Assembly: GCA_024704765.1 (NCBI GenBank)
Contig: JAKMXF010000011.1
Span: 62,001 to 126,000 of the forward strand
From: Oopsacas minuta
Taxonomy: Eukaryota; Animalia; Porifera
Length of the DNA stretch: 64,000 nucleotides
Reading direction: 5' to 3'
Shown here: positions 6,015 to 46,371 of the stretch, piece after piece
How the letters are laid out: every line of letters begins with the position of its first letter
Position numbering within the stretch: position 1 is the first letter of the stretch
Notes under the pieces: model-generated
Databases searched by the model: none
Told to the model about the DNA's origin: nothing
What the model saw: only the letters and a program-made list of their open reading frames with translations
Made by a program: the position numbers and the translations under genes

Positions 6015-6372
6015 CAGTAGAGACCGTGAATGATACAAGATTTGTCAATTTTCCATGTATAACTTGATAATCGTTGAAATTATCGTCAAATCAGGATTTC
6101 CCAATATAACTCTCATACCTAACCTCGCATAACTTTATAATTCATTTCGATATTATACCTCTAAGGATAATTGCGGAATTACCAAAGTGACAGTATATGG
6201 GCATGTTGCTGATAACGTCACATTGGTAAAAATATTCTAACGAGGAATATTACAAGGGTATGTAAATTTGGGTGTATATATAATATTGGTTATCCTGATT
6301 TGACAAGAATTCCTACAATAATCGAGGTAAAAGTGGATATTGACAAGCATCTGTCATCCATGGTCTCTACTG
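6015..6372. mobile_element. 358-bp pogo/Tigger-like MITE with ~85-bp imperfect TIRs
   Basis: TA|CAGTAGAGACCGTG...CATGGTCTCTACTG|TA. The TIR similarity extends to gtcaaatcaggat / atcctgatttgac. Confidence 0.75.
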
Positions 6373-6756
6373 TAACTCGGGAAGGTGGAAATTTATCATG
6401 ATATTGAAATTTTATTCCCTGTAGAAATGTTATTAGATCATCAAAATTTAAAATTAGGTAAAAGATCAGATGTATAGCTCTACATGAATCAAAGATAAGG
6501 TTTTAGAGTGATTAATTTGGCGTAAATCTTGATACTAAGCAAACAAATTTGCACATTTCGAAAATATTGTTTTGTATTGAAGACGTATTTCCACAATTTT
6601 GTAGCATATTCAATACCTGAAATAAAACTAATACATTTCAAATGTCTAAAGCTAACTGATATCGATAAATTAATAATAATAACTTATATGGAAGGGTGTA
6701 AAATCCCACAACTTACATACCACAAATATTTTCGATAAATTAATGTGACCTGCAGA

Positions 6757-6825
6757 CAGGGGAGTAGCTAGGGTAGGCATAAGAGGCTTTGCCGCACCCT
6801 TTGTGCGGCCCTAGCTGCGACTCGG
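6757..6825. mobile_element. Possible tiny hAT-type MITE (69 bp)
   Basis: Left end caggggagtagctaggg versus right end (reverse complement) ccgagtcgcagctaggg, 12/17 match. Flanking 8-mers cctgcaga / cctgcgaa match at 6/8. Confidence 0.4.
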
Positions 6826-15456: not shown

Positions 15457-16972
15457 CTAAAAGAAAAATTACATTTCATCTCTCACTCTTCATAAGCATA
15501 TACAAACGTCGCCTAATAGATGCAAGATGTAATAGGAAATTGAGTAATTTGGATCAGTGATAATGGTGTATATGAATATGAGTAAAAGTGGTCACTACAT
15601 TGTAGAAAGAGTACACGAATAACCTATTGAATGTGTTGAATAATTTTAGTACAAAACGTTTTGGACACTTAAGCAAAGAATTAAGCTGGGAGAAAAAATT
15701 TGACGAAAACCAACAGGAATACGATAAGTTGGTAGCTGTTGAATTGAGATAATAAACTATACTGTTAAAACGCAATTGATATGTATGTATATAATATATA
15801 TACATATTATTATGCCAAGAAATGATGAAGAAACTGGAGGGCCCATAGAGAAGATATTGGCAGACAGGGGTATTTTAGGCCTGGCTTGGACAAGTTCGAG
15901 CCTTGGACGAAAGTTCATACCTATGACGAAATTATGGGGTCATTGTGACCGTTTGGAATACTCGAAAAATAACATTTTTAAGCACTGCTAAGCCAATATA
16001 CATGATAAAAGTCTGAAATTTGTATCACAAGTGCCTCTCAATATGTTAAATGTCCTGACGTTATCACTTGGACCAAATTAAACCTCATCTTGAAATTATT
16101 ATGTTATCATGATTGCACGAAATATCCAAATTTTCCGAATTTCACTATTTTTGAGATTTTCAAGATGCTCGAGTCACCAAGTTCCCAGATTACAAAGCAA
16201 AACCACGTGACAGCTCCAGTATTACCACATAAGTCCATTAAATGGAATTTGGATGGGCCATGGGTAACAACAAATTTAAATTTCATCTAAAATTTACCTC
16301 AAGGCACGTAGTCCAAGTATATCCAGGCGCGTAGCCACCAAAACATTGACAAATTTAGATGTTTAGTACTCATGCTTAAACAAGGCGCAAAGCTCAATGG
16401 TACGTCCGCCCGTCCCGCAGTAACCTATCAAGCGAAGTGCGCTAGTATATAGTAATAATTGTGCAGAGACAATGATGATTTACTGGAATATTCGGGACTG
16501 TTATTAATTTCTTCAGTCTAAAATTAAACAAATCTTGAGATCACAAGTTAATAATTAAAAAAGGCAATTTGGTATGTAATTCTACGAATGCCATCATAGG
16601 GTTACTTATGCACCAGTGAACGGTTGTTTTCAGGTGCCCAAGTCCGGACTAAGGGTCTGGATTTCTACAGCAATCGATAAGAGTTTTCCAACGAAGTGGG
16701 ACATTTAACAACTAGACGTATCATACTACACTGGTGACAAGAGCCCTAAATATAGAGGTGATAACATCTGATGACAACAACATATCCTCACTCAACTTAT
16801 GAATCATCACAATTAATGTGTCGATAAATTGCTGATAATATCATATATCACTATATCTTCATGTATCAGTTGCATTTTTCACAATTTACATTCGAAAAGA
16901 ATGCCACTTAAGAAATTCATAATTCCCTGAAATGATTCTAGTGAAAGGTTTTGTTAGGTTATGGTAATACTA

Positions 16973-18299
16973 CGGGCGTTCAATAAGTAGTCGTTATCAC
17001 ATTGTAATTCTAAATTTTTTTAGTATAATTGTGCATTCAGTGATGGAGCTTCTCAAAGTATTCCCCTTCGTACTGTAAAACCAATTTGGGCCTTTTTATC
17101 CAATTGAAAAATACTTTTTTGTAGTCTTCGGTTGGTACACCTTTCATATACTGGAAAATCGCTGATCCTATCTGAGCTCGACTCTCGAATTTCCTGCCTG
17201 ATAGATGTTTCTTTAGCTTTGGAAAAACCCAAAAGTCACAGGGAGCTAGATCTGGCGAGTAGGGAGGGTGATCTAGTTCCACAATCTTCATAGCTTCTAA
17301 CTTTTCTCTAACCAGCTTTGTCTTGTGCGGTCGGGCGTTATCATGCAATATTCGCAATCCACGAGTTCCAGTCCTTGGCCGTCGATTTGGTAGAATTTTT
17401 CAACCTCTGTTACACACTCATTGGTGTAGAAGGAGCCTGTTATTGTTTGGTATTTGGCGACACAAATCTGGCACACTGGACCATTAGAATAAAAAAATAT
17501 ACAGCACATAACCTTCGGGTCCCGAGAGTCATGTTGAGGGATCATTGGTGGGTCCTGTCCTTTTGCCACCCATACTTTGTTTGCTTCTTTTATAAAGGCT
17601 CAGAATAACGTACCCAAGTTTCGTCACCTGTTACTATTTCAAATAACCTTCTGGAGTCAGCTCGATCAAACTCAGAAAGCAATTTAGTAGAGCATTGGAC
17701 CCTCTTTGCATTCTGGGCCTGAATTAGTAAATGCTGTACCCATCGAGCACATATCTTTCCGAATTTCATATTATCATGTACAATAGCTTGAACAGTTCTC
17801 ATTGAGATCCCAACCGCATCAACTATCTCCACAAGCGTGATATGAGGGCCTTCTTCAAGTAACGCGGATACCTCAAGGATATTTTGTCACTGGCGCTGGA
17901 AACTGTCTCCCTATTCTTGCCCCATCTTCAATGGACACTCTACCATCACGAAAGCGTCTAGCCCCATCAACAACAGTGGAATATGGGAGTGCTGTATCCT
18001 TATAAACTTCCTCTAAATCTTTGTGGACATCTGTTGGTGAAATTTTGAGCAGTGTTCTGATCTTCACATATACTCTCTGCTCAATTTTGAAATCTGTACT
18101 TTTTGAAGCCATTAAAAATGTTACTATAATAAACTGTCAAAATGTAAATAGGTACAATATTAGACGAGACATCAGAATCAGAACGCTTTGCATTATTGAA
18201 TTCACAAAGGATGGATAGTTATTAGAAAATTCAGTTTAATCTGGGTCGAAATATCCCGACTTACAAAATTCGGGATAACGACTACTTATTGAACGCTTG
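16973..18299 (-). mobile_element. Full-length degenerate mariner (DD34D), 1,327 bp
   Basis: TA|CGGGCGTTCAATAAGTAGTCGTTATC and its inverse ending ...GAACGCTTG|TA. Frameshifted transposase at 17037-18112 with IVTGDETWV, ILHDNARPH and HPPYSPDLAPCDFW; 34 residues counted between the second and third D. Confidence 0.96.
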
Positions 18300-19755: not shown

Positions 19756-19988
19756 TGTATTCTTTAATTTATACATTAAAACACAATCGATATCGCATGT
19801 ATAACCACGGTGTATGAAAAAATGTTTATATCTTTGCGTGACCAGAATTGTTCGAATATGCTGGAAGACGAGGCGGGATTATATTTGAAATTATGGAGGT
19901 GACTGGGAAAATTAGAGTAATGGACGAAAGTACACTACTATGACGAAATATGGAGTAACTGTAAATTTCAAAATTCAAAATCACATTA

Positions 19989-22278
19989 CACAGGTCAACA
20001 AAATTTAACTTCATTTTCTCACTAAGTATTAGATTGACATTTCTAAGCTAGTTTTTTAAGCTGAATTCAAATCTGCTTTCAGATTCTTTCCAGCACGTCC
20101 AGTTTTTTCCCATCTACAAGTCAACGATTTTTATGTATTTCTTAAATTTTTCCTGTTATTTTATGGTACTGGCTGTCTTTTTGTCTTCTTACATGATACC
20201 CATCTGAAATAAATTAACGTTTCGATGTTTTAGATTAATGCCAAGATAATATCAATTATTATTCTAGCTCTTACATATAATTATTCACATTCATGCATGT
20301 ATCAACTACTCAAAAACTAAGGGGAAATACATATCCATCTAGAAGTATAAAGGTAGCTAACTAAATTAAAAGTGTTGAGAGTATGACTTCCTTTTATATA
20401 TCTTGTTGGGATTATCTCTGAAGAGCCTCCAACAGTAATCGGACATCATGCCCTCATTCCAGAAACCTTGGTATCGGGTTTCCATCTCCTGTATGTCTTG
20501 GTGGAATCTCTCACCCTGTTCATCACTTACAGCACCAAGGTTCTCAGGGAAAAAATCAAGGTGAGAGTGCAAGAAGTGAAGTTTTAGCGACATGCGACAA
20601 CCCATCTTCTCGTATGCGTTAAGCAAGGTTTCCACTCCTTCTCTGTAGTTGGACGACTTCTTGTTGCCCAAAAAGTTTTCACAAACCCATTTGAAAGAAT
20701 TCCAAGCACTCATTTCTAATTCGGATAATGTCTTCTCGAAATCTGGATCTTTGAATACTTGTCTGATTTTTGGTCCTACAAATACTCCCTCTTTTAACTT
20801 TGCCTCGCTTAGTTTCGGAAATTTGCCTACCAAATGCAGACATCCTGCTGAATTTGTTTTGCCCATTGTTTTAACGAATGTTTTCATTAATCCAAGTTTA
20901 ATATGAAGTGGGGGTAAGAAAACTTTGTTTGGATCTACCAATAGCGAATGCTGTAAATTGGTTTTCCCCACTTCATAGGTTCTCTTCGGCCAATCACATT
21001 TTTTATAATGTTCGCCAGTTGCTCGGCTGTCCCATAGACATAGGAAACAACAATACTTTGTAAAACCTTGTTGCAAGCCCATCAATAGCCCGATTATCTT
21101 AAGATCACCGCAGATATTCCATATATGTGTGCTATACTGTATTGCCTCCAAAACTTCCTGCAAATTGACGAAGGTCTCTTTGAGATAGACGGAGTGAGCA
21201 ATTGGAACGCCAGGCTTTAGATCTCCGTTATGCAACAGAACAGCTTTCAAACTGCGTTTTGACGAGTCGATGAAAAGGCGCCAATCGGAGGAAGAATGTT
21301 CTTGTAATAGGTTTGCATAGAGTCCTTCGATATCATTACAATAGCACAGTGGACTATCAGTGGTGTAGTATTGAGCGAGATCGAAATTTCGCTTGCGATA
21401 GTGGGATACTAGGACATCTTTGTCGAGTAGGTTTTTCTGTTTGAGCCTGGATGCAAGGAGTTCAGCTTTGTCTTTAGATAAATCTAGATCCCTGACCAGG
21501 TCATTCAATTCTCCCTGTGTAAATGTTTGTGGCTCTAGTAATTCATCTTCCGGGACATAATTAGCATCTGTAGAATCTGCATGAACATCTTTCACCATAT
21601 CAGACCCGATTATAATTTGCTGTGGCTTGGGAATTGGGATTGGAATGAGATGTCGCGTAGAATTGGCCTGCGAGCAGAATCCAAGTCTGGGTAAATAAGA
21701 GCGTGCTTATTCTTGGCTGAGAATCCTGTAATGTTGATAAGGCAAAAGTAACAATCATCAGGGTGATTTTTCTCTTCCCTCCAGACAATGGGTATTGCAA
21801 ATGGCATTGAAACTTTCCTTTTGTTCAACCAATCACGTAGTCCACTTGAACAAGAAGTACATATAACATGTGGTGCCCACGACTTGTCTTGGTCACCAAG
21901 TGGACATTCGAAGTACAATTTGTATGTGTTCTTTAATTGATTTGTGATTGGTCGTCATTGTGATTTTACGCAAAAAAGACCACAAACGTAACAGAAATTG
22001 TCGGGATGAGTTCTACAACTACGATGCATGTTTATAATTTGATTTGCTTGAATTCAAATAAGTAAAGTCATTTATATTCCAGATAATTGAATCAAAATAG
22101 GCATGCTCATATAGCAATTTAGTAACTAGGTAATACTATACTATTGACAAAATGGATATTGGATTTCAGAATAACTAGGCGTGCTAGAGAAATTCTGATT
22201 GCAGATTCGAGTTCAGCATTCAAAAGTATGCTAAGATAAATGTATGTGATCTCTGATGAGAAATCTTGTTGAGTTGTG
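19989..22278 (-). mobile_element. Full-length Chapaev3-like (CMC superfamily) DNA transposon, 2,290 bp
   Basis: TTA|CACAGGTCAACAAAATTT ... AAATCTTGTTGAGTTGTG|TTA: CAC/GTG termini, TIRs matching at 15/18, and an identical 3-bp TTA TSD. CAC termini with a TWA TSD are what I recall for Chapaev3. Confidence 0.85.
20366..22029 (-). pseudogene. Near-intact Chapaev3-like transposase (one stop, one frameshift)
   Basis: MHRSCRTHPDNFCYVCG...(TGA)...GDQDKSWAPHVICTSC...VWREEKNHPDDCYFC, then a frameshift near 21600 into the 410-aa ORF with RLFIDSSKRSLKAVLLHNG, ICGDLK, CFLCLWDSR, PPLHIKLGL and SDEQGERFHQDI. Confidence 0.9.
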
Positions 22279-22589
22279 TTATCGAACACTGCTCAGCCAT
22301 TATAATTGATAAAATTTATCATATAGAAACCTCAATATTACCAATTTGTGAACATCATGATTACAACTAAATGTAATATCACCATGGAATCGTCAGGTTT
22401 TGATGAATGTACAATAATCCAATTATAGGATTTCGAAATTTGGAAAAGTTATGGAACACTAAGTTCCGAGATTGATAATAAGCCAAACAAGAGTAGAGCT
22501 AGTGTCACTCCCGAAACCATTTAATACAAATATAAGACTAAGAGAAAATGGCTCAGCTATTATTTAACCTCGAGGCACATAGTGTATAG

Positions 22590-26447: not shown

Positions 26448-27777
26448 TTAGGGCGTTCAATAAGTATTGCGAGTGATATCATAGAATATGACACAAACAC
26501 TATACACACTAACTCACTATATTATTTATTCAAAGTAATCCCCTCCTGCGGATACACAAAGTTTTAACCTTTCCACCCACTTGTAAACACATTTCTGTAC
26601 TCTTCTTCGGGGATGGATTTAAAGTACTGGTACAGGCCCGTTCCGAGTGCCTGTAATGTGTTAAAATCTTTGCCTTGGAGGTAGATTTTAAGCTTGGGAA
26701 TAGCCAAAAATCACACGGAGCTAGGTCTGGTGAGTATAGTGGATGGGGAAGTTATTCTAGCCCTTCTACATCCAAGAAATTTTTGGAAAGCTTAGCTGTA
26801 TGGGGAACTGGCGTTATCAATTGAAATTTTCATTCCTCGAGTTCCGGTTTTCGGGCGGTACTATTCTATATTTTTATCAAATTTGGAAGCACTTGCTCTG
26901 TAAAGAAAGTAGCAGTAACAGCCTTGCCACTCTCACAAGGTAATTGCAAGATAATTCCATGACTACTGAAGAAGATGGTATGCATAATCTTAGGTTTTCT
27001 GAAGTCGGACCTAGGAATTTTCGCCGGTTGTTGGTCGCCCCTCACCCATGATCGCTTCTTATACTTGCTGTATGGTGTTTAATAGTACACCCACGTCTCG
27101 TCACCAGTAATAATCTCTGTTAGGCGTCTAGAATCGCAGTTCTCATAAGTTTCCAAGAGTTTCTTGGCAATTTTCAGTCGTACCAACCTTTGATTCTCAC
27201 TGAGCTTATGCAGGAGCCATTTCCCACAAATCGATCGGTAGCCAAGCTCAGTCGTCAGAATTGTATGAATAGTTCCCGATGAAATCTCTATACTTTGTTC
27301 TAACTGGTTAATAGTAATGCACTTGTCTTCCATGACCATACTTTCAATGAGTGCGATATTCTCTGAAGTAGTGGCGGATACCGGTCTTCCAGATCGAGGC
27401 AAATCTGTGACATCAGCATCACCAGATCTAAAATGGGCAGCCCATCGCTCTACAGTAGATCTGGAAAGGCAATCCACGCACAATATCTCCTGTAACTCGC
27501 TGAAGATCTGTACGAGCTGGATCTTGAGTATTGTGCGAAACTCTATGTAAGCTCGCCATTTGAGGTTGAAATTATCCTTTGAAGCCATAAATTCAACAGT
27601 GGGTATAATTTGACTACACGTAACTATCCCAAAAATTCATAAATTGTATTGAATAGACTTGAAACTTTCAATATATGGAGTTTAACTATATCGGCTTATA
27701 ATATATGAAAGTTAGATATATTACTTGACTAATTCCTAAGATATATCATGACCCGCAAGACTTATTGAACGCCCTGA
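26448..27777 (-). mobile_element. Full-length degenerate mariner (DD34D type), 1,330 bp
   Basis: TA|T(T/C)AGGGCGTTCAATAAGT TIRs with TA on both sides. The 169-aa ORF 27079-27588 (RSGRPVS, GKWLLHKL, IITGDETWVYY) is followed by broken frames ending SPDLAPCDFWLFPKLK. Confidence 0.94.
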
Positions 27778-29169
27778 TATCTGTAAATCAGAAATGAATC
27801 TCAGAATCAATTATGATGCTCAAAACTAGTGTGTAAACTCTGGATTGACTAGCTGTTAATCATAAATAATGGGATGAGAGCTAGTTGGTAGGATTATAAC
27901 TCTCTAATCTAACTCCCAAACTACAACTCGTATGTCTTCATCCACTATTGTCCCAGTCTGCTGAACTTCAAAGCCGGAAAATATTCGGCATGAACGATAA
28001 GAGGCCTCATATTGAAGCTCTCCTGATTCATTTAATTAATTTCAGTAGTGGGCAATCTACGCCGAGGGTTACATTTCTTCCGCCCTTGGATCAAACATTT
28101 ATTATAGAATTTAGTGAATATTGGAAGCTTACGTATATGTTCAGTGTTCATTTAGACAAGAAATATATACATTATTTCCGATTTGCAAACGGCATATACT
28201 TGAGAATACGGTCCAAGTGAGGAAGATAGCCGGCGTTCGGGCATTTCAATAGGATTTCAAATGGTACTTCATATTCCAACGGCAAACAATACCGGGTATA
28301 TATATAAAAGGAATTTGAACTATACAGTAGACCTCATAATGGGTACTCGACTTAAGATGTACACTTGATTAATACGTGTATTTATCCAAAACGGATCAAT
28401 CAATTATAATAATTGATAGGAAGAATTTTCGGCTAAGGCTTACTAATTTGAGTTTCCGAGGGGGTACGTCACATCCGAGTCATCTTTACAACAGTGAATT
28501 ACATCAAGAAGTCCATCGCCAGGAATTTCAAACAAATTATCAAGAAATGACGATGGAATTTCATAGGGCATTTCGCTATACAAAGAAGCTGAAGGAAAAG
28601 CAATATGACATTTTGCCAATTTGTATAATCTTCCTAGTCCCTTCAGATGGAACACTGGGAATTAAGAATCATAGCAGAGAATATTACACACAGTAATCAA
28701 ATTACCATGTCAAAGCTAATATACTTGTTACTGCGCAGACAACTACGTGACGGGCCAGTAGTGAAAAGTTGTCTTTATGATTCTTTATATTGTTTCTTAC
28801 AAGTAAATATTACCAAAACATTGGTTATCAAAAAATATATATTTTCTATCACAATATCTTCTTTTATTATTCAACTGTTCAGTGTTGTGAGAACCATATC
28901 TCGTTAAACCAAAGTTCTTCTGCGGTGGTGTATTACATGGGTTCATCAATTTCAAAGTTAAAATTACGTAAATTTTGTATACTTGTACTTCGTGCTCTAT
29001 AGATATTATTCTTACGAATATGCGTGCCTGACATAAATCTGCACTTTTCTATCTAAGTGGTGGGGGAAAGGTATGTTAGCCCGAAGAACGTAAAAGGAAG
29101 GAATAGAAAATCAATTAACCTAAAATTACTGAGAGCTTGTTAGCTACAATCAATCAATTGCAATAATTA

Positions 29170-30991
29170 CAAAGGCCTACAAAAATGTTATATTGCAGTT
29201 GTTTATATTTTGATCACTGAATTAGACTAATTTAGGTGCGCTGATTCTGAATATCTATTCAGTTATTTCTTATCACTTCAGGTCTTTTCACAACCATATA
29301 GCTACATTTTCAGAAAAATTTCCTACTTTTGCCAAAAATTCATCATGATTCCATATTACAACAATAACATATATACATAGTATATATATTCAAATAGTCT
29401 TATTTGCTAATTGGTTTTTAACTAGTCTGTTATCCTTTTTTGTTGATAGGTCGAAAAGAAAACGTTTCAATTCGTCAGACATTTTTGTTATAATCGTGGT
29501 TCTATACTCCGAAACCTCGGATGTAGAATATTACTGAATTTGTGAATAAAGCTTACCATGTGTATTTCAAAGTTAAGCTGGGCGACCAAGACAAATGTTG
29601 GGTACCTCATAAGGTCTGTAAATCTTGTGTAGAATTATTGAGGCCTTGGAGTAAGGGGAAAGAGAAACGCTTCCCTTTCGGGATTCCTATGATTTGGAGA
29701 GAAACAAAAAAATCATTTCGATGATTGTTATTTCTGCATGGCAAATGTTATGGGTTGCAAAAAGAGTAACAGACACTTGCTTAATTACCCAAATTTAGAA
29801 TCTGCTATTCGACCAGTCCCTCATTGTAGTGATCTACCTGTACCAATATTCACAGAGTTTCTCGTACTCTATAATGATGAAGATGGTGCCAATTCGGAAG
29901 AAGTCAATGATCATGACTGTGAATATGATGTTGATTTTCAAGGTCCTTCCTTGAGCCTTCTCTCTTTAACCAAGCGGAATTGAATGATTTAATTCGTGAC
30001 CGTGACCTCTCGAAAGAATCTTCTGAGTTACTTGCATCTAGATTGAAAGAAAAGAATCTACTCCATCAAGTAACAAAGGTAACATTAATCGTTACAGGGA
30101 GCAAGAGCTTCAACAGTATTTCTGCGAAAAGAATGGTTTGGTGTTTGTCCAAATGTTGAGGGTCTTCTACTAGCAATGGGAGTTCTGAACTACAATCCAA
30201 GTGACTGGAGGCTGTTCATTGACAGCTCCAAAAGGAGTCTGAAATGTGTACTACTCCATAATGGAAATATATTCGGTTCAATTCCTATTGGATATTCAGT
30301 TAAACTCAAAGAGGAGTACAATAATGTGAAAGAGATATTAGAGATTATTAACTACTCTGCACATGATTGGGTCATCTGTGTTGATCTCAAAATGGTCAAC
30401 TTTCTATCAGGACAACAATCTGGGTTCACTAAGTACCCCTGTGTTTCTTTGTTATTGGAACAGTAGGGATAGGAACCAGCATTGGATAATGGAAAAGTGG
30501 CCTCCGAGAGAATGTTTGAAAGTTGGGGACAAAAATGTAATTAATAACCCTCTGGTACATACAAATAAAATAATCCTACCTCCTCTCCACATTAAGCTTG
30601 GTTCAATGAAGCAATTCACCAAAGCACTGGATGAAGACAGATATTGTTTCTAGTACATCCGAAATTATTTTCCAGACATCAGTGAAGAGAAGAAAAAGGC
30701 AGGGATATTTGAAGGTCCATAGATTCGCAAGTTACTTAGAGACAACAGCTTCAAAGATTCAATGAACAAGGAAGAGAAGAGAGCGTGGCAGGCTTTCTCT
30801 AATGTCGTTTCTAATTTCCTTGGTAATAAAAAGGCATCCAATTACAAAGAACTAGTCACAGAGTTAGTCGACAGCTATCATGCTCTTGGCTGTAATATGA
30901 GTATGAAAATTCATTATTTGAGAGACCATCTTGATAGATTTCCGGATAATCTAGGTGATATCAGTGAAGAACAAGGTGAACGATTCCATAC
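29170..30991 (+). mobile_element. 3'-truncated Chapaev3-like element
   Basis: The left end TTA|CAAAGGCCTACAAAAATG resembles the other copies. Broken ORFs carry KLGDQDKCWVPHKVCKSC, RLFIDSSKRSLKCVLLHNG, PPLHIKLG and SEEQGERFH, after which similarity stops abruptly. Confidence 0.85.
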
Positions 30992-30999
30992 CTAAGTTT

Positions 31000-32117
31000 C
31001 TAAAAGATAATCATCACAAGCCTCGAAGTACGAGCTGATTAGTTAAAACGTGTCTACAGACTAATATTTGATCTTAAAGCCATTACTCTGGATCACTAAC
31101 TTCTGACGTTTTGGTATAGATTGCCTATAAGGTTCAAACTCGGGTTGTATAGAATCCCAAATAGAGAGAAGGGTTTCTTCAAGTCCACTAATATTACGAG
31201 GAGGGTTCAAATCGATCTGATGTTTGATTCAAGCCCACAAATTTTCGATCGGGTTAGATCTGGGCTACAAGCAGGCCATTCCATACGAAATATATTATGG
31301 CATTCACGGAAAGTCTGAGCAACGTTAGACGTGTGCTTTTGATCGTTGCCTTCCTGAAAGACCCAACTGTCAGGGTACAATAGCTGAGCTTGTGTATCAG
31401 ACACACGTTTAGGATGTTCGTATATAATTCTCCGATGAGGTTCTCCCAAAAAACATTCAACGGAGAGGTCACAAGAGCAGAATTGCTCACCAAACATGTG
31501 ATTTCGATTACATTTGTTGCTTTGCTTGACCGGTAGTTGGCCTCCTTTGCACCACAGCCTTAATCTGCCATCTGCTAGCCAAATTGACATCTCATCGCTA
31601 AAAACAACTCGCTCCAAATCAGTTTGTTTGTTATGCTTAGCCCACAATACTCTTTGTTGTTTGTGTTAATCCGTTAGCATAGGAATACTCCCTGCAACTT
31701 TGTGAGTGTACTCTCTCCTCTGTAATTCCTTCCCAACCGTCTCATGGGATAAACTTTTCTGGTGAAGATGATTGAATCGGCTAGCCAATTTTCGTATGGA
31801 CATCTTGCGATTCTGATTTGCCAAGATTACATGAGATCTGGCATCGTTCACATGTCACCGCCCAGAAAAATTATAGCTAATATGCGAAAACAGTGCTCCT
31901 GGGATAGCTGTACGCTGATGTATTTCGCTACCACTTGTAACCCCCGCATCGGAAAATTTGCCGATGAGGTCTCCTCGTTTTAACTCCATTATATTGATTA
32001 CGAATTCGACACAAAAGACAAATATAAGGCAAAATCTGATATTGTAACGGTCTATGAGAATATAGCAGAAATTGTTGGGAATATGTATTGTAAGTGACAG
32101 AATGATAGTTGTTCGTG
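31000..32117 (-). mobile_element. Tc1 (DD34E-type) fragment
   Basis: MSIRKLASRF, VVFSDEMSI, WVFQEGNDQKHTS and MEWPACSPDL motifs. A possible terminus TA|CACGAACAAC lies at 32117; the other end was not found. Boundaries are approximate. Confidence 0.8.
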
Positions 32118-32508
32118 TATTCTAGAATCAATCAATTAATGGTAACATGATATACATGTATAAATGAATCAGAAAACAAATGCGTTTCATATCTAACAAT
32201 AGCAAAAGAAATAATCCTGAAAATATATACATTAAAACGAAAGTCTCAATTTCATCTTGACAGACCGTAAATAGATCCCATTAGATGTATTCTGAAAGCA
32301 AAAATATAATCATTACTCATTACAGAGTTAGAACATCTGAGCATTTATAAGACATTATTCAGGCAGGCAGCAGAGGAATCTTAAGATGGAAATATTTTGT
32401 AGGTATAAAATGTGTGTATTCTCAAATACCAATAGCAAATAAATTATTCTCAATGTCTACAATAGAATTATACAACTACAAATATATTCCTCCTATGTGA
32501 ATATTGAG

Positions 32509-35500
32509 TAGGGGGAACGGAAAATGCAAAGATCACATTTGTATACTGGAACTATAATATTATTAGTTGTATTGTGTTTGTAATAATTCTGCAAATTTTG
32601 AGCTCATATAAATACCCCTTCCTTAGCAGTTTTTCATTTTGTATCTGTCTTAATAGTTCATATTCATACTCATAAGGAAATTGACTCAAATATGATACAG
32701 GAATCCCAAAGATATTTATGAGACTTGATAAACACTTTGTAGTGAACTATAATTGTTGTGATTCATTACAAAATTTACTACTTTTCAGATTGATACTGCT
32801 TTATACTTATTATAGCTTTATTATTGCTCTAATTTAGTTCTATATCTTCATAATTTATATGGCATATGCACCAAATAGGACGCGTCAACATAGACACATC
32901 CAATTTTATCCCCAGCGGTATTGCCTGTTAATCAGCTTCTAACAGGGAGAGATATATGTAAATATATATTTTAAGTGTAAACAAGATTAAGAAGATCATG
33001 GATTAATCCCCAACGGGAGATTGCTTCTATTCCATATATCATAGAGAAAGTTAGTGGGGTCGCAGATCAGTTAGGTGGATGGGATTGGAAGGGCGAGGAA
33101 AATATTGCCCGATGGGTATTGGAAACCTGCATCTCTGCCCATTATATCTAAAAAGGGTGTCGTTAAAGCTATGAAGGCTCTCTAGTCTAAAGCAACTAAC
33201 ATTATTCGTTGTACTCCTGAGGAACGAAGAAAACTCATGAGAATTACGAAGAATTTGTATCTGACCGTTTAGATTTCCTTTTTGATATTTGCCCATGCAA
33301 ATGTAAACATATCAATTGCGATGATGTTAAGTGTTATAACTTACTTTGTGTTGAGATTCATCTCCTTTGTGGTTGTGCTCACAAAGTGCCTAGACGAGAG
33401 TTATCATTTCTCTTTAACCAGAGAACCGACAGAAAGATGTACATAGGCGGTATTGATATCCACACCTCAACGATATTGTCGAAAATAGAGCAAAGAAAAA
33501 TTTCCCTCAAAGAAAGAATTGAATTGAAAATAAAGAAAGAGAAAGTTGAAGCCGAGTCGTACAACTATTTCCAAATTGAGGATATAGAAGAAACGGATAC
33601 TCAGAACGATGTTGAACATGTTAATACGAATTCTAAACCTTTGTCAAAATCATTATCACTTCGAAATACACAGACAATCCCAAATATAGCTATGGCTGCC
33701 TATCGATGTGGAGTTTCTAATCGAGCTACAGCTGCGATTGCTACAGGCACTCTAATAGATTTCGGACTTATAACACCAGAAGATCAAAGTCTTAGGACAG
33801 ACAAGAATAAGGTGGCAAGAGCACGCCAAAAGTATGGAAATCAAATACAACACAAAGAAATGGTAGAAGTAATTGATGTTACAGGTATCTATTTTGATGG
33901 AAGGGACGATAAAGCACTTTCAAGTATAACCATCAATGGTAAATGTCGTACTCAAACTTCAGTTGAGGAACATATTGTTGTGATTGATCAAAAGAGTAGG
34001 TATCTTTTCCATACAACTCCTGAATCTGGTCACAGAATCAATATCGCTTCATCAATATATGCCCATCTCCAAAAAAATGGATTGAGAAAGAGAAATTCTA
34101 TTAGTAGGTTGTGATGGTACGAATGTAAATGTAGGTTGGAAGAATGGGTCTATTGTTAACTTGGAAAGAATGCTTGATAGAGAATTACAATGGGCGGTTT
34201 GTCTGCTCCATACTAATGAACTGCCCCTGAGACACTTGTTTAAATATTTTGACGGGAAAACTAGCGGGTCGAATTCATTTAGTGGCCCAATCAGCAAATC
34301 ACTGAAAACAAACTCTCTAAGATTCCTGTAGTAAAGTTTGAGCCAATAATTTATAATGAGTTCCCTGAGATGACAAAAGAGCTGATAGACGATCTTAGCA
34401 CTGATCAGGGTTATCTCTATAGGATTTGCCAAGCATGTTTACGGGATAATTTTCCAGAGGATCTAGAGCTACTCGAACCAGGTCCAATTTGCCATTCCAG
34501 ATGGCTTACCCTAGCATGTAGAATTGTCCGCGTGTATATGTTAACAATAAAACCATTTACGAGTTGAAACGACTTATGATTATTGTGAATAATTTATATG
34601 CACCATCCTGGTTTTATATTAAAAATCATTATAAATTTACAGACAGACCAAACAATTTATTGTGGATGCTTAAGCACCTCACATACTTGAGTCCCACTGA
34701 ACTAGAGGTAGCGAAGAAAGTATTTCAAAGAAATGCTTTCTTTTCACATCTAGAAAATGTTTTGCTATCTATCTTATGCGATGATGAACCTAGGATACGA
34801 ATTGAAGCTGTGAAACGTTTATTGGATTTGCGAGATAATCAACTTAGTTTGGCAGTTGGTGGTAAGGATGATTTGCCAAGGGTTGATATTTGTGGAAAAC
34901 TTATTAGCACTAATGAAACAGTAATGCCAAAAAATATTAGATCTTTCAAGTCCTAAAATTAAACTTTAAAGCACAACTATATACCGAATTGTTTACCTGG
35001 GATATTAATGTCATCAGCGAGCCACCTTTAATACGCAATATGACAGAAAACGAATTAAAAACATTCACGCTACCCCCTTTCCATGCCTAATTATATGTGT
35101 CACAACCAACCAGTTTGACGAGCAGTAAAAGTTGTGACCGAGGCACCTAAGAGTGTTTGTGGTGAAGATAACCGTGATGGATTCATCCGTCAGAGACTAA
35201 AATCAAGAAGACTTATGCCCTAACTGATTCGAAACAAGATTTTTGTTTTCATTTCTCTTAAGTCCGAAAGCCAATTCTTAAATATAGTTTGATTGTATTT
35301 GAAGTTGTATTTTTTAATGAATTATACAACGAATGATTTGAACAATTTCTAACTACAGTAGAACCTTTTGAAGCGAGGAAATTGGGCGCCCCAAAATTTC
35401 ATCTTCCGCATCTCCGCTTTGTGATGATGACTTAATTTCCATGAAAATTAATGTAGTTGAAACCTATTTTACGTCCCGAATCGGAAGGATCCAAACATTC

Positions 35501-36036
35501 TTTGAAAATTTCAGCTCATTTGTATTAGTTCTTGCTTACCAGTTTTATTTGCTTGGAGTTGGACAATAAGCAAAAATACATCCCCATCCATAATTTAACA
35601 TTATATAACTTTTTTAAATGAAGTGAATTTCATTTTGGGATTATAATATATTGGTTGTTCTGATATGCACAAACATTCTTGTAAAATTTCAGCTTATTTG
35701 TAGGTTCTTGCTTACCAGTTATTTGCTTTGAACAGTATATGTGATTAATGCAATCCTTTCCAAACTATACATATTTTGTAATTTAGCTTATTTTGATTTC
35801 GTGGTGAATTCAAATTAACAAAATTGATATAATGAATTCCTGTATCATATTTGAGTCAACTCCCTTATGAGCATGAGTAAGCACTATTAAGACAGGTACA
35901 ATATGAATAAACTGCTAAGGAAGGGGTATTTCAAATGAGCTCAAATTTTTGCAGAATTATTAACTAACATAATCCAAACAATAATACTATAGTTCCAGTA
36001 TAGAATTGAGATCTTTACATTTTCCAGTTCGCCCTA
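32509..36036 (+). mobile_element. hAT-superfamily (hATm-like) transposon, copy 1, 3,528 bp, transposase pseudogene ~32859-35250
   Basis: TAGGG...CCCTA termini, ~200-bp imperfect TIRs, and a perfect 8-bp TSD ATATTGAG (32501-32508, 36037-36044). Broken transposase with GVSNRATAAIA, IYFDGRDDK, GCDGTNVNVG, QWAVCLLHTNELPLRHLF, HSRWLTLACR and NAFFSHLENVLLS. Confidence 0.9.
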
Positions 36037-36869
36037 ATATTGAGGCATTTAATCAATCTTTGGTCCAAAATTGTAATACCAACCATTGCTTGAATCTATA
36101 TAATGCTATAATTTAAGCAATATCAATCAAATTGAGGGACTGTTGAGGTAGAACTTGTAAAATCGTATTTAAAGACAATTTACATTGTCGATTTGTGCAT
36201 ACCAAAACATTTTGAATGTTGTCTAAATTATCTTAACCATACCAATATTTATGTGTAATGGCGGTAGCACTGATGCATCGGTCGTAACATGGCCCCAGTT
36301 GCCCAACTATGAATTTTGGTAATCGAAATTAACCAAAGGCTATAATAGAAGTGGGGACAATTGCGTAAATAAATTTCTTTTCATTGAAAGGTAACTATCT
36401 ACGCTTATTATAAATTTACATAATAATTTGATCATATCATAGAATATTCTAGAACAATAATTATGTGCTCCATACAATACATTATCTTCCAATCAATTTA
36501 ACTTGTTCACAGAATATAATATGACTGTTTGAAGTGTACCAATCAATTCATTGCCCTCTTGCACATGCCCCTATTTTCAGTAGAAAAATAGAAAAATCGT
36601 AAATTAATTACATCATGGGGTTACTGCTGAACCTATTGTGTATTATAAGGTATTTGCAATATTTCATCTCTCTGACTGATAGAAATGATAGTTATAGAGC
36701 TCTAGCGAGGGATAATTGGTGGTTGAGGCGGAGGTACCAAATCTGTACAAGGCCTATCACTATACAGGGGATCCAATATCTATTGACCTGCCAATTGGCC
36801 CGTATTATCCACGCCTTATTTATAATCCGTGGGGTCCAGGGACCTAAGACTGGACCTAGGAGACCCTAT

Positions 36870-38579
36870 ATTTCTATTTGTAAGAACAGGAAGAGAAAGA
36901 TATATCGAGGCAAGATAGAAATCGATCGGCATTAAGGAAAACAGAACTGATACTAAATGGTGGGCAGAGTTTGACTAGTGACAACGAATAATATGATTGA
37001 GAAAATGAAAGATCCTGAAAAAAGTGCTGAGCATAATGAAATTCAGCGCAAAGGAAAAGCTGAGAGTATGAAGGATCTTGATAAGCGTGTTGATCATTAA
37101 AATGCAAGCTAACGAATCTTATCGAGTAGCAAACAATTCAATCGCAATTAATTCCTCAACTGACTTATCCAAAACAATATCTGTACGAAAGATACGACCT
37201 CAAGTTGTAATAGCAGCAACTTGTAATCTTTCTACCACTGAAATCTTTAAACAACATAAAATTGAGTTTCAGAGGAGTGGAGTAATTTGGTAGATACCAC
37301 GGATAATATTGATATTATCGTAAAACATAACAATATTCCTAGCATTGATCATTCGGTGTAGAGTAAAAAAAATAGAAAACTGTGCTGATTCTGTTGTGAT
37401 AACGACAATATTCCTGAAGACTTTGGATAGTAATGTCTTTAAGGAAATAGACCAATGGGATGAGACAAAGGATGAACTTCGCATTAACTCTGGTTGTTGG
37501 AAAGTCTTTTGATGTTTAATGAAAACATTAAATGAGGTGTAGGAATTTATGGATCGAAAATACCCCTAATAAGATCATTTTACAACGATGCAAGCCTAAG
37601 ATGATTGTGTATATATAGTAGAATACATTAGTAAAGAACAACCTGGCATGTCTGAGTTACTGATAGAGGCAATATTGTATCAAAAAGCAGATGACAATAA
37701 TCAAGGAGAGACTTAGGAGATGAGCGAATAAGTTTCAGAACTCCAGTAAAGTTTCAGCCCAGGAGGTCTCATATCATATCCCAAGTCTTCCTCTCTCCAA
37801 ATGTAGCTGGGTTAATGTTTAATTAACTCTAATCCGGCTCAAAAACATGGTAGAATTTAAATCAAGGCAAGTGTTACAAAGGATGGCTGATGACTCAAGT
37901 GATGTTCTTAAGTCACATTTACTGGAACACCTCATGCAGCGAACTGATGAATTAGAGGACATTCCTTGAGCAAAATCTGCCCAATGTATGATTTCCAATC
38001 GGGTGAAAGAATGACTAAATATAATCCTAAATTAATCAGGAAAACTCTGATGATAAGCCAAATCCTCTTATTGACAACCGCCTTCTTGTTTAAACTGAAG
38101 GATTCTAGGTATATGATACTCCGCCGTAGAGCGAATGTGATCGCTTTCGTAAGTATAATGTAATGCAAAAAGTTACCCTTTATAGAGAACAGTTAAAGTC
38201 ATACTTTGCTTAGAGGGTTGATTACATTGATTTCAAATCTATTCATGAGACTAAAATTGATGTTATTAGACAAAATAGGTCTTGTTTTGAAAGCAAGAAG
38301 CAGACTTCTATAAACGAGGCTATGGATCTCTTAAAAGACGTACAACCTGATCAGATAAACTCTGATGGAATTGCTGTAGAGGAGAAAGTGCACAATGAAG
38401 GTGTAACTGTAGCTGAGGATATAGACGAATGGATGGAAAATCAAAGAAAGCAATCTTGAAATATGGATCCGCCTATAATTCTCGTTCAGGAGGACCTTCA
38501 ACATCCTTAATAGAATGCGCACTGGTGAGTTTGGTGTAATGTGTCGCCAATGGAAATCGATTCAACATAAATTCTACAT
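36870..38579 (+). pseudogene. Helitron RepHel remnant, 5' part (N-terminal and Rep-distal regions)
   Basis: Frameshifted motifs: RKIRPQVVIAATCNL (~37190), YIVEYISKEQPGMSELL (37612-37662), KFQNSSKVSAQEVSYHIPSLPLSKCS, QRTDELEDI and LYREQLKSYFA*R. These follow the order seen in Helitron RepHel proteins. The left boundary is approximate. Confidence 0.75.
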
Positions 38580-41500
38580 TAGGGCGAACTGGAAAATGTA
38601 AAGATCTCAATTCTATACTGGAACTATAGTATTATTGTTTGGATTATGTTAGTTAATAATTCTGCAAAAATTTGAGCTCATTTGAAATACCCCTTCCTTA
38701 GCAGTTTATTCATATTGTACCTGTCTTAATAGTGCTTACTCATGCTCATAAGGGAGTTGACTCAAATATGATACAGGAATTCATTATATCAATTTTGTTA
38801 ATTTGAATTCACCACGAAATCAAAATAAGCTAAATTACAAAATATGTATAGTTTGGAAAGGATTGCATTAATCACATATACTGTTCAAAGCAAATAACTG
38901 GTAAGCAAGAACCTACAAATAAGCTGAAATTTTACAAGAATGTTTGTGCATATCAGAACAACCAATATATTATAATCCCAAAATGAAATTCACTTCATTT
39001 AAAAAAGTTATATAATGTTAAATTATGGATGGGGATGTATTTTTGCTTATTGTCCAACTCCAAGCAAATAAAACTGGTAAGCAAGAACTAATACAAATGA
39101 GCTGAAATTTTCAAAGAATGTTTGGATCCTTCCGATTCGGGACGTAAAATAGGTTTCAACTACATTAATTTTCATGGAAATTAAGTCATCATCACAAAGC
39201 GGAGATGCGGAAGATGAAATTTTGGGGCGCCCAATTTCCTCGCTTCAAAAGGTTCTACTGTAGTTAGAAATTGTTCAAATCATTCGTTGTATAATTCATT
39301 AAAAAATACAACTTCAAATACAATCAAACTATATTTAAGAATTGGCTTTCGGACTTAAGAGAAATGAAAACAAAAATCTTGTTTCGAATCAGTTAGGGCA
39401 TAAGTCTTCTTGATTTTAGTCTCTGACGGATGAATCCATCACGGTTATCTTCACCACAAACACTCTTAGGTGCCTCGGTCACAACTTTTACTGCTCGTCA
39501 AACTGGTTGGTTGTGACACATATAATTAGGCATGGAAAGGGGGTAGCGTGAATGTTTTTAATTCGTTTTCTGTCATATTGCGTATTAAAGGTGGCTCGCT
39601 GATGACATTAATATCCCAGGTAAACAATTCGGTATATAGTTGTGCTTTAAAGTTTAATTTTAGGACTTGAAAGATCTAATATTTTTTGGCATTACTGTTT
39701 CATTAGTGCTAATAAGTTTTCCACAAATATCAACCCTTGGCAAATCATCCTTACCACCAACTGCCAAACTAAGTTGATTATCTCGCAAATCCAATAAACG
39801 TTTCACAGCTTCAATTCGTATCCTAGGTTCATCATCGCATAAGATAGATAGCAAAACATTTTCTAGATGTGAAAAGAAAGCATTTCTTTGAAATACTTTC
39901 TTCGCTACCTCTAGTTCAGTGGGACTCAAGTATGTGAGGTGCTTAAGCATCCACAATAAATTGTTTGGTCTGTCTGTAAATTTATAATGATTTTTAATAT
40001 AAAACCAGGATGGTGCATATAAATTATTCACAATAATCATAAGTCGTTTCAACTCGTAAATGGTTTTATTGTTAACATATACACGCGGACAATTCTACAT
40101 GCTAGGGTAAGCCATCTGGAATGGCAAATTGGACCTGGTTCGAGTAGCTCTAGATCCTCTGGAAAATTATCCCGTAAACATGCTTGGCAAATCCTATAGA
40201 GATAACCCTGATCAGTGCTAAGATCGTCTATCAGCTCTTTTGTCATCTCAGGGAACTCATTATAAATTATTGGCTCAAACTTTACTACAGGAATCTTAGA
40301 GAGTTTGTTTTCAGTGATTTGCTGATTGGGCCACTAAATGAATTCGACCCGCTAGTTTTCCCGTCAAAATATTTAAACAAGTGTCTCAGGGGCAGTTCAT
40401 TAGTATGGAGCAGACAAACCGCCCATTGTAATTCTCTATCAAGCATTCTTTCCAAGTTAACAATAGACCCATTCTTCCAACCTACATTTACATTCGTACC
40501 ATCACAACCTACTAATAGAATTTCTCTTTCTCAATCCATTTTTTTGGAGATGGGCATATATTGATGAAGCGATATTGATTCTGTGACCAGATTCAGGAGT
40601 TGTATGGAAAAGATACCTACTCTTTTGATCAATCACAACAATATGTTCCTCAACTGAAGTTTGAGTACGACATTTACCATTGATGGTTATACTTGAAAGT
40701 GCTTTATCGTCCCTTCCATCAAAATAGATACCTGTAACATCAATTACTTCTACCATTTCTTTGTGTTGTATTTGATTTCCATACTTTTGGCGTGCTCTTG
40801 CCACCTTATTCTTGTCTGTCCTAAGACTTTGATCTTCTGGTGTTATAAGTCCGAAATCTATTAGAGTGCCTGTAGCAATCGCAGCTGTAGCTCGATTAGA
40901 AACTCCACATCGATAGGCAGCCATAGCTATATTTGGGATTGTCTGTGTATTTCGAAGTGATAATGATTTTGACAAAGGTTTAGAATTCGTATTAACATGT
41001 TCAACATCGTTCTGAGTATCCGTTTCTTCTATATCCTCAATTTGGAAATAGTTGTACGACTCGGCTTCAACTTTCTCTTTCTTTATTTTCAATTCAATTC
41101 TTTCTTTGAGGGAAATTTTTCTTTGCTCTATTTTCGACAATATCGTTGAGGTGTGGATATCAATACCGCCTATGTACATCTTTCTGTCGGTTCTCTGGTT
41201 AAAGAGAAATGATAACTCTCGTCTAGGCACTTTGTGAGCACAACCACAAAGGAGATGAATCTCAACACAAAGTAAGTTATAACACTTAACATCATCGCAA
41301 TTGATATGTTTACATTTGCATGGGCAAATATCAAAAAGGAAATCTAAACGGTCAGATACAAATTCTTCGTAATTCTCATGAGTTTTCTTCGTTCCTCAGG
41401 AGTACAACGAATAATGTTAGTTGCTTTAGACTAGAGAGCCTTCATAGCTTTAACGACACCCTTTTTAGATATAATGGGCAGAGATGCAGGTTTCCAATAC

Positions 41501-42108
41501 CCATCGGGCAATATTTTCCTCGCCCTTCCAATCCCATCCACCTAACTGATCTGCGACCCCACTAACTTTCTCTATGATATATGGAATAGAAGCAATCTCC
41601 CGTTGGGGATTAATCCATGATCTTCTTAATCTTGTTTACACTTAAAATATATATTTACATATATCTCTCCCTGTTAGAAGCTGATTAACAGGCAATACCG
41701 CTGGGGATAAAATTGGATGTGTCTATGTTGACGCGTCCTATTTGGTGCATATGCCATATAAATTATGAAGATATAGAACTAAATTAGAGCAATAATAAAG
41801 CTATAATAAGTATAAAGCAGTATCAATCTGAAAAGTAGTAAATTTTGTAATGAATCACAACAATTATAGTTCACTACAAAGTGTTTATCAAGTCTCATAA
41901 ATATCTTTGGGATTCCTGTATCATATTTGAGTCAATTTCCTTATGAGTATGAATATGAACTATTAAGACAGATACAAAATGAAAAACTGCTAAGGAAGGG
42001 GTATTTATATGAGCTCAAAATTTGCAGAATTATTACAAACACAATACAACTAATAATATTATAGTTCCAGTATACAAATGAGGTTTTTCCATTTTTTGGT
42101 TCACCCTA
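38580..42108 (-). mobile_element. hATm-like transposon, copy 2, inverted relative to copy 1
   Basis: Reverse complement of copy 1 with a constant coordinate sum of 74,616 for every ORF pair and both arm ends, so there is no net indel. All six-frame ORF translations are identical. Only the outer 28 bp (42081-42108) differ. Flanking 8-mers TTCTACAT / TTATTCAT match at 6/8. Confidence 0.92.
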
Positions 42109-43500
42109 TTATTCATGCACACCTTAACTGCTCCTAGCTCAAGGATAACAAATAACTTCCGATCTATCATCCATTGGAGGAGGCTCTAGAGTTGTAAGAG
42201 TACTGTAATCAGAGCCTTGTATGAAGGGTAGACAAGATATTTTAACTCATTACCTAGTACTAGTCGAGATCCTATTAAGGTGCTATTAACAGCCCACAAA
42301 GTCAAAGCAGCACTTAATAGCCGTGGTATGATATTCAAATCTGCTTTTGCTTTACATGCAACGAAGTTTATTGGTGAAATGCCTATTCTTGCCGGGAATG
42401 TATTGAATTCTCTATAGAGTAAAGTATTGGCATTAAAATTAATCATAATCGATGAGATATCCATGGTAGGTAGTAAAGTATCATATGAAATTATAGTTGA
42501 TTGGAAGCAACATTTGGCACACCTCTCCGTTTTGGTGGTATTTCCATCATTTATGCCGGCGAGTTCCACTAAGTACGCCCGTGAAAGATAGATATATCTT
42601 TCAAGTACAAATACAAAAGATGATTCAGTAGTTGGCCCATACCTTTGGAACGAGTTATCATTTATGAAGCTTACTGAAATAATGAGACAGAAAGATTATA
42701 AAGAGTTTGCAGCTGCTATAAATCATTATGCTAACTTAATATAACCATGAATGATATCAATCCTTTCAATAATATACAAATTGGAAAATACTCATTAGAT
42801 AAACTTCATCCTAAGTATATCCAATTCTTGAGTAGTAATGATAGTATTACTGCCCATAACAAGTATATTCTTAATGCAATGGATACTGAAGGTTGGGAAC
42901 CTACAGCAATTGATTCTTTATTAGGTGATGCCATTGGAGAGTAAACTGAGAAGGTGAGAGATAAAATAAAACAGCTAAAAGTCTCCGACTCGCAGGGAGA
43001 GCCATATGAAATGAATCTAAAGGTATTAGCTAGATACATAAGGACTATAAACAATGATACTTCAAATGGGACTTGAATGGAGCAAGAGGTATCCTCCGGA
43101 GAATAGAGTATGGAACTAAGAATGATACTTAAGAACGCTTTCCCCGTATCCTTGGTGGAATTTGTCGATCCAACAGTTAGGTAGCGAGACAATTCAAAAA
43201 GTCATTACCTTCGAAATAGTACAATCCTAAAGCACTGGACTCCCCTTGGATTTGAAAATAGACATTTTTACAAAGGAAAAGGAGTGATTTGTTATTAGAA
43301 TTGTTAGGAAACAATTTTGTTTCATTGTAGCTAAAGTTTTCACTATTAATCAGAATCAAAATGATAATAATGAATACGTAGTTGTCCATATAGATCGATT
43401 CAGGTCTCGTAATGTATTATGCACTGCCCCTTAGTAGAGCAAAATCTGCTTCTGCTCATAGATTGTAGCTACAAAATTTCAGTTAAAGATCTCGCTGTTT
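42109..43500 (+). pseudogene. Helitron PIF1-family helicase remnant, 3' part
   Basis: Walker A remnant GGGSRV(G)KSTVIRALYE (~42176), KVLLTA, Walker B LIIIDEISMVG (42442-42471), FGGISII.AG, LTEIMRQKD, LNGARG, VRKQF and LSRAKS, all in the expected order. Confidence 0.9.
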
Positions 43501-45386: not shown

Positions 45387-46371
45387 AAACCATGGATTAC
45401 TTGGAGTTCACTAAATTTGATATCCAATAATATTATTCAGAGAAATACAAAATAAATGTATTATTGTTAGTAAATAATCAACACAAGCTAAATCATCCGA
45501 CGAGTCCTAGGTCGAAATGACGTTATCTGAATGGCTTAAACGAGAATATGTCGAAAAAATGAGCGATTTTACAAGCTCTGTCAAATGATTAATATCGCTT
45601 CGTTGACTCTAGAATTAACACAAAATGATTTAAGCATTATTTCATTCTAAATATCAAAAGATTATCTTAATAAAGTTCTCAGGTTTCAGACTTATAATAG
45701 TGAGCATGGATGACACATTTCTACAGATATTCACCTATAACTTGACAAACTTAAATTTTATGATCAAAGGTCTTGCAAATCTATCATACATACTCGATTC
45801 TCATACACTGATAATACATATTGATATGATATGTCCAAGGATTATTGCACACTCATCAATACTACCATATATGGTCACTCTAAGATTGCATCATAATTGT
45901 CAGAGATATAATATAAAAAAGTATTATATGCGTATGGGAAGTCTGGTTTATACGATATGATCGCAAGATTATTGACCATAAAATTTAAGTTTGTCAAGCT
46001 ATTAGGTGAATATTAGCAGAGAAGTGCATCCATGCTCACTATTATAACTCTGGAATCTGATAACCATATTATTGCAATTTTTTGATATTTTGTATGCAGA
46101 CATAATTAGATCATTTGATGTTAATTCTAGAATTGACGAGCGATATTGAGACTGACAGAGCTTGGAACATGGAACATTTTTAACAAAATATTCACGTTTG
46201 AGCCAATTAGATGACGTCATTTTGACCTGGCACTTGTCGGAAGACATGACTTGTGTCATTTATTAACTAACAATAATACATAAATTAGAGCCAAAATGTA
46301 CTAATTTTGTATTATCGTGAAAAATATTATTTCCTCTTAAAATTTAATGGACATAAAGTAATCCATGGTTT
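45387..46371. repeat. Foldback-type element with ~400-bp imperfect inverted arms (~985 bp)
   Basis: aaaccatggattactt at 45387 versus aagtaatccatggttt ending at 46371. Internal blocks pair throughout, e.g. aatagtgagcatggatg / catccatgctcactatt and cttgacaaacttaaattttatg / cataaaatttaagtttgtcaag. Confidence 0.8.

Follow-up and report, generated by a model that had tools for sequence, protein, structure and literature searches.

Sequence exchange between copies of a transposon has been described in several systems. According to PMC6598467, old Alu copies are replaced by younger ones, and conversion is enriched for copies less than 10 kb apart; the ectopic conversion of Alu is attributed there to Kass 1995 and to Aleshin and Zhi 2010. 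PMC3878927 describes the copying of P and Tc1 interiors from ectopic templates in gap repair and cites Fischer 2003 for a "continuous exchange of sequence information" in Tc1, and in PMC8604942 template switching between short imperfect inverted repeats homogenises their arms. The locus considered here lies in a stretch of 64,000 bp from the glass sponge Oopsacas minuta (assembly GCA_024704765.1, contig JAKMXF010000011.1, positions 62,001 to 126,000, forward strand; hereafter the window, numbered from its own first base). It consists of two dead transposons, classed below as hAT-like and named copy 1 and copy 2, which lie in opposite orientation and are identical in the assembly except at their outer ends. 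Judged by its bases, copy 2 is a chimera, in which the extreme end of a different family member is joined to the body of copy 1.

The identical arms and the chimeric join

Base-by-base comparison of 32536–36038 with 42080–38578 gave perfect reverse complements (3,503 bp, 0 mismatches), made up of 3,501 bp of the element and two flank bases (AT) that agree by chance; a repeat search of the window located the inverted repeat at 32521–36043 / 38573–42095. The outer 27 bp of copy 1 (32509–32535) and the outer 28 bp of copy 2 (42081–42108) differed by seven substitutions and one indel; the contrast between 0/3503 mismatches in the tract and 7/27 at the outer end gave p = 7e-16 (Fisher). The two copies were 99.8% identical overall and 100% identical in the body, with 0 differences across the last 28 bp at the inner edges of the pair and 0 within about 400 bp adjoining either arm edge. 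Identity of the inverted arms was accordingly above 99.9% (100% over 3,503 bp around a unique spacer of 2,543 bp), a value that depends on the assembly. An earlier note on the window, in which segments of the arms had been compared by eye, had given arms of 32536–36036 and 38580–42080 as reverse complements, the same count of differences at the outer ends and the same spacer length; all three were reproduced by the exact alignment (spacer measured at 36037–38579).

Other copies of the family were found by protein searches with the open reading frame (ORF) pieces of the pair, which led to O. minuta gene models and from these to loci; the sample is therefore one of gene-model-bearing copies. Four further full-length copies were obtained: L005, L006 and L008, each carrying a nested insertion, and L007 11346–14874 (JAKMXF010000327.1). 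Nested insertions were removed before pairwise identities were taken; five lineages were compared, the pair being counted as one, and a substitution was scored as private if it occurred in one lineage only, at positions where at least three of the four other lineages agreed. The features of the pair are as follows.

32501–32508 (+): left target-site duplication of copy 1, ATATTGAG, identical to 36037–36044 and fitting nTnnnnAn
32509–36036 (+): copy 1, hAT-like element of 3,528 bp, probable donor; ends TAGGG...CCCTA, perfect 8-bp duplication
32509–32535 (+): outer 27 bp of copy 1, absent from copy 2; 5/27 positions private relative to the other family copies
32536–36038 (+): left arm of the identity tract, 3,503 bp, matching the reverse complement of 38578–42080 without a mismatch
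36037–36044 (+): right target-site duplication of copy 1, ATATTGAG, same as the left one
38572–38579 (+): inner flank of copy 2, TTCTACAT; 6/8 match to the outer flank
38578–42080 (−): right arm of the identity tract; 0 mismatches to 32536–36038
38580–42108 (−): copy 2, 3,529 bp, probable recipient; by sequence a chimera of 28 bp of another lineage and 3,501 bp identical to copy 1
42081–42108 (−): 28-bp outer end of copy 2, a terminus of hAT type from another lineage with greater divergence; 7 private among 26 scorable positions
42109–42116 (+): outer flank of copy 2, TTATTCAT; 6/8 match to the inner flank

The terminal sequence of the family is well conserved among the other copies. None of the five private changes in the first 27 bp of copy 1 is common to copy 2, and the first 28 bp of copy 2, with their seven private positions, contain no copy-1-specific base at all; from base 29 on, every copy-1-specific base is present, and the join is in exact homologous register. 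The switch occurs within an interval of about 5 bp, just before the block TATACTGGAACTA, which is conserved in nearly every sampled terminus. The terminus of copy 2 is more diverged than the other termini (p = 0.003 against their rate of 7.5%). Divergence of copy 1 amounts to 18% in bases 1–27, 10% in bases 29–100 and about 4% thereafter; since the raised divergence runs from the first of these intervals into the second, the terminus of copy 1 looks native to the shared body, and copy 1 is therefore the likely donor. Hypermutation of the termini was considered as a separate cause and set aside: the excess in the first 27 bp of copy 1 continues into bases 29–100, termini of the family evolve about 1.7 times faster than the body in general, and the excess was taken to be a feature of the lineage. 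As an observation apart from the join, the first ~100 bp of the pair lineage (32509–32608) carry 12/98 private positions versus about 3.4% elsewhere, i.e., they are about three times more diverged.

The target sites differ between the two copies. Copy 1 is enclosed by a perfect duplication, the flanks of copy 2 match at 6/8 positions, and the other family copies show 7/8 to 8/8; the perfect and the decayed duplication ascribed to copies 1 and 2, respectively, by the earlier note were thus recovered. At each of the six insertion sites, position 2 is T and position 7 is A. A 6/8 match is expected by chance in 0.7–0.8% of cases, or in about 5% when the hAT pattern nTnnnnAn is allowed for. Taken with the diverged terminus, this match suggests that an older resident occupied the site of copy 2. 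On either side of the element, the flanks of copies 1 and 2 part at the first or third base beyond its end; flank comparison revealed no copy-1 flanking DNA at copy 2, and no paralogous "empty site" of either insertion was present in the window or in the fetched loci.

Decay of the family, timing of the copying and quality of the assembly

Pairwise identities among the five lineages were 90.6–93.4%, in a star-like pattern. No other copy more than 93.4% identical to the pair was found among annotated proteins or loci, a sample short of a whole-genome census; a recent burst of identical copies was rejected on this ground. The comparison proposed in the earlier note, namely whether this pair only is ~100% identical, thereby gave the result it had anticipated, the four other full-length copies all lying in the above range. 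The shared sequence of the pair contained 128/3431 private substitutions (3.7%), the other copies 4.2–5.1%. In the coding region, the private changes of the pair were distributed over codon positions as 20:12:16 (p = 0.37), and a similarly even spread was found in every lineage, which argues that private changes accumulated without selection, as in resident dead copies. Two 1-bp indels occur in the pair lineage only: an insertion near 34078, which causes the first break of the frame, and a deletion near 35076. All private substitutions and indels of the pair are present in both arms; the sequence had therefore decayed for nearly the whole age of the family before it occupied two sites. Each lineage has 1–2-bp indels of its own, with private frameshifts in 5/5 O. 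minuta lineages sampled, and no active or intact source copy was found among the sampled O. minuta copies. The absence of differences over 3,503 bp puts the copying no further back than about 1.1% of the age of the family burst, on the assumption of an exact assembly (somewhat more if a few differences are hidden). The sequences thus read as an already decayed copy that was duplicated late onto a second site.

The assembly was produced with SPAdes 3.9 (--careful, k = 21–99) from Illumina and Canu-corrected PacBio reads, followed by SSPACE, Pilon and GapFiller, at ~186x coverage (PMC10280926). A second inverted repeat of the same assembly, at 2124–2714 / 5400–5991 of L007 (~585 bp, 99.3%), retained an isolated single-nucleotide difference, with no other within 180 bp of it, and one homopolymer indel. 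In a de Bruijn graph, a repeat longer than k is one edge crossed twice, and small variants are removable as bulges; arms that are truly ~99% identical can therefore be printed as 100%. The difference kept in L007 is of limited use for judging sites far inside a 3.5-kb arm, since it is reachable by paired reads anchored outside the repeat. A near-identity of about 99% or more was therefore taken as genuine, and a literal 100% as the reading given by the assembly.

Several observations were made on the insertions and relatives met in these comparisons. The nested insertions (L005 2390–3988, L006 7025–9339, L008 5808–7126) are other transposons, and have relatives of 92–96% identity in the window at 29173–30989, 19982–22282 and 16965–18296, respectively. 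Contigs of ENA ERZ25071281 contain relatives of the family that are only 83% identical and probably come from another species (L003, 72–1700 / 4188–7562; L004, 2594–4060 / 4062–5943); the L003 copy has identical sequence over the first ~80 bp read from either end, the same ORF occurs on two contigs, and a full copy abuts an oppositely oriented partial copy, which suggests nested self-insertion. The family looks young there.

Classification of the element and its surroundings

The terminal inverted repeats of the element (~200 bp) are 87% alike, close to the roughly 85% of the earlier note, and its transposase frame is broken in the same way in both arms, as that note had stated of a dead transposase:

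33221–35087 (+): broken transposase reading frame, at least five frame pieces (stop-to-stop ORF pieces)
39529–41395 (−): mirror broken transposase frame, identical by position to 33221–35087

The ORF pieces matched A1, a widespread family of proteins of ~750 aa (hhalign E 1e-45 and 2e-31), which has 725 relatives at E ≤ 0.001. No Pfam match, the hAT dimerisation domain included, was obtained with the window ORF pieces or with five full-length ~750-aa relatives, and a profile search of PDB sequences with the family was blank. The relative P0022 was modelled with AlphaFold2 (m7bfcc177c0a6; mean predicted local distance difference test score, pLDDT, 81); in a Foldseek search of the model against PDB, the six best matches were all chains of the Hermes transposase, whose fold is an RNase-H-type core split by an insertion domain (E 4e-5 to 2e-4, probability 1.0; ~550 aligned columns; template modelling score, TM, 0.41–0.47 by target, i.e., moderate), and the P element transposase ranked lower than Hermes. 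All copies of the family start with TAGGG, TAGGA was found at two 3' ends, and these ends conform to YARNG; the family terminus is TAGGGCGAACTG, which resembles hobo/Hermes-type ends. The designation "hAT-like" is justified by the 8-bp nTnnnnAn duplications, the TAGGG ends and the predicted Hermes-like fold; the hAT label of the earlier note is thus backed by target duplication, end sequences and predicted fold, and not by Pfam. By its modelled fold, the transposase family looks like a divergent hAT-like clade missed by current sequence models.

Between the copies lies a single segment:

36037–38579 (no strand): unique spacer, 2,543 bp; no similarity to the element or to other loci

The ORFs of the spacer had no Pfam match, and an exact look-up of a spacer ORF, by which an independent assembly of the locus was sought, gave no match. 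NCBI gene models include one of 127 aa inside the spacer (38011–38459) and P0001, called on both arms and nowhere else; the locus retrieved through P0001 (L001) equals window 28437–39956 at 100%. No gene spanning window 23437–46179 is present in the NCBI annotation, the models there being short and transposon-like, though the same annotation does list a host gene spanning locus L008; introns of O. minuta average 341 bp (PMC10280926). The placement of the pair inside an intron by the earlier note is therefore unsupported. Neighbouring ORFs matched only Tc1/mariner-type helix-turn-helix (HTH) and DDE_3 models; Tc1/mariner HTH and DDE_3 fragments occupy 27082–31665, and the search for host-gene context around the pair returned transposon debris only. 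Two further observations were made to the right of copy 2: an "IDEISMV" motif in its flank (42440–42470, +), resembling the Walker B box of PIF1/Helitron helicases, and ~830 bp at 45456–46281 that are self-reverse-complementary at ~76%, resembling a decayed foldback or hairpin element.

Probable repair-templated overwriting, rival explanations and known systems

Ectopic gene conversion or gap repair probably rewrote an older resident at the copy-2 site from copy 1. An older relative, full-length or internally deleted, would have resided at that site, inverted with respect to copy 1 and 2.5 kb away from it; the family would have been immobile, and copy 1 decayed, long before the event. A break or gap in the resident would then have been repaired with copy 1 as template, by intrachromosomal ectopic gene conversion or by synthesis-dependent gap repair, possibly with template switching; the sequence from base ~29 to the inner end would have been replaced, in one event or in several, and the outer 28 bp of the resident and its flanks kept. 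So narrow a switch, with just 28 bp of poor homology at its side, is more easily reconciled with the priming of a repair end on copy 1 from the conserved block than with a long heteroduplex. The overwriting of one arm by the other, as put forward in the earlier note, is favoured by the 90.6–93.4% identity found elsewhere, the private changes carried by both arms and the foreign 28-bp end; the literal 100% identity that accompanied the proposal is not supported, and neither is the independence of the two insertions stated in that note, since an old local hop with later conversion may also account for the pair.

A number of points weigh against this reading. If the resident was ~27% private throughout, as in its 28-bp end, homologous recombination of the ordinary kind would work poorly between it and copy 1, and the model has to invoke priming of the repair at short conserved blocks. 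At the inner end not one base differs; the tract thus extended to within ~13 bp of that end, unless the resident had the matching sequence before. A resident is deduced from 28 bp and the 6/8 flank match (~5% by chance) only; the comparison covers no more than six family copies; and the perfect identity is that of a de Bruijn-graph assembly. A single event accounts for the data equally well as the ongoing palindrome-type homogenisation invoked in the earlier note. It is improbable that recurrent arm-to-arm conversion keeps the 3.5-kb repeat perfect, as one case of a genome-wide tendency of O. minuta to form or retain inverted twin hAT copies, which might persist because their read-through transcripts fold into long hairpin RNAs that silence the family.

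hAT-type elements hop locally, and the pair could stem from an ancient local hop of copy 1 followed by continuing palindrome-like conversion, which spared the outer edges alone and let them drift apart; the arms are near neighbours in inverted orientation, their identity extends as far as homology does, and the outer termini are 5/27 and 7/26 diverged from the family consensus versus ~4% for the body, in a family whose termini are the faster-evolving part. This course of events is nevertheless unlikely: nothing escaped at the inner edges, the outer ends have no derived base in common, though a common origin predicts some, eight differences in 27 bp exceed the ~2–5 expected since the burst, and nothing indicates more than one conversion event. 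Unlikely, too, is an effect of the assembly, by which the arms would be similar and not identical, or the interior of copy 2 mis-threaded through a collapsed SPAdes edge, with Pilon blind deep inside a 3.5-kb repeat. The use of SPAdes with k up to 99 and then of SSPACE, Pilon and GapFiller (PMC10280926) is in keeping with such an effect, as is the stop of identity exactly at the branch points expected of a graph path; however, copies diverged by 7–9% share too few 99-mers to collapse, so that the arms are at least about 99% identical and the chimera stands either way. Moreover, the isolated single-base difference in the inverted repeat of L007 was kept, no difference appears in the ~400 bp by the arm edges, where paired reads could restore one, and seven clustered substitutions at ~186x are unlike the error pattern of long reads.

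Recent mobilisation in trans, in which dead copy 1 was moved nearby by a foreign transposase, landed by the end of an older relative and acquired its hybrid terminus by a later deletion, is very unlikely. Local hopping would account for both the perfect identity and the closeness of the copies, the hAT target pattern is matched on either side of copy 2, as if its flanks came from two insertions, and the young copies, identical ends and nested self-insertions of ENA ERZ25071281 indicate that the family can be active. Three steps are required, however, one more than for conversion; a new insertion should bear the terminus of copy 1 and a perfect duplication; among the sampled O. minuta copies none is active or intact; and the 93.4% ceiling among annotated proteins or loci leaves no second close copy. 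Three other explanations were rejected: inversion between the twins, which would have swapped the target duplications, because the duplication of copy 1 is direct and perfect (for the same reason, the spacer was not flipped an odd number of times); a fold-back or chimeric-read artefact, because neither the spacer nor either flank is repeated and copy 2 ends in a terminus of its own; and sister-chromatid or reversed-ends alternative transposition, which would duplicate or delete flanking DNA, no flank being duplicated.

Under repair-templated overwriting of the resident by copy 1, the locus is a clean, datable case of a dead DNA transposon rewritten from its neighbour in an early-branching animal, and would mean that, in a glass sponge, inverted repeats lying near each other exchange sequence. 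Copy-to-copy identity is then an unsafe clock for transposon age in the O. minuta genome; for annotators, "young-looking" twin copies in this genome need checks of ends, flanks and reads before recent activity is deduced, the read-level check being needed since the assembly is graph-based.

The mechanism of overwriting is already known, and no new one is revealed. With the palindromes of primate sex chromosomes, human included, the pair shares long inverted arms, a unique spacer, identity above the expectation from age and a sharp drop at the boundary; the arms of those palindromes arose by duplication and carry selected genes, whereas here each arm is a transposon copy, and the flanks of the two differ; recurrent conversion in those palindromes is established by cross-species comparison, whereas the present pair is known from one assembly. 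The template switching described in PMC8604942 likewise makes inverted arms identical by copying one from the other, in that text between short quasi-palindromes of tens of bases with short spacers versus arms of 3.5 kb at a distance of 2.5 kb here. Gap repair of P and Tc1 elements is alike in that the interior comes from another copy, the flanks of the recipient are kept, the chimera is in register and a nearby template in cis is used. Templates in cis are preferred in gap repair. It is unlike in that no active transposase of the family was found among the sampled O. minuta copies, and the break therefore need not be transposase-made; hAT excision is not known to leave element ends behind, unlike that of P elements. 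Ectopic conversion of Alu differs in its object, i.e., 300-bp short interspersed elements (SINEs) versus 3.5-kb DNA transposons with a tract of 99% of the element in a glass sponge host; the likeness lies in an old resident that takes the sequence of another copy and keeps its position and flanks, in a mosaic of diagnostic bases, and in a process that is strongest within 10 kb.

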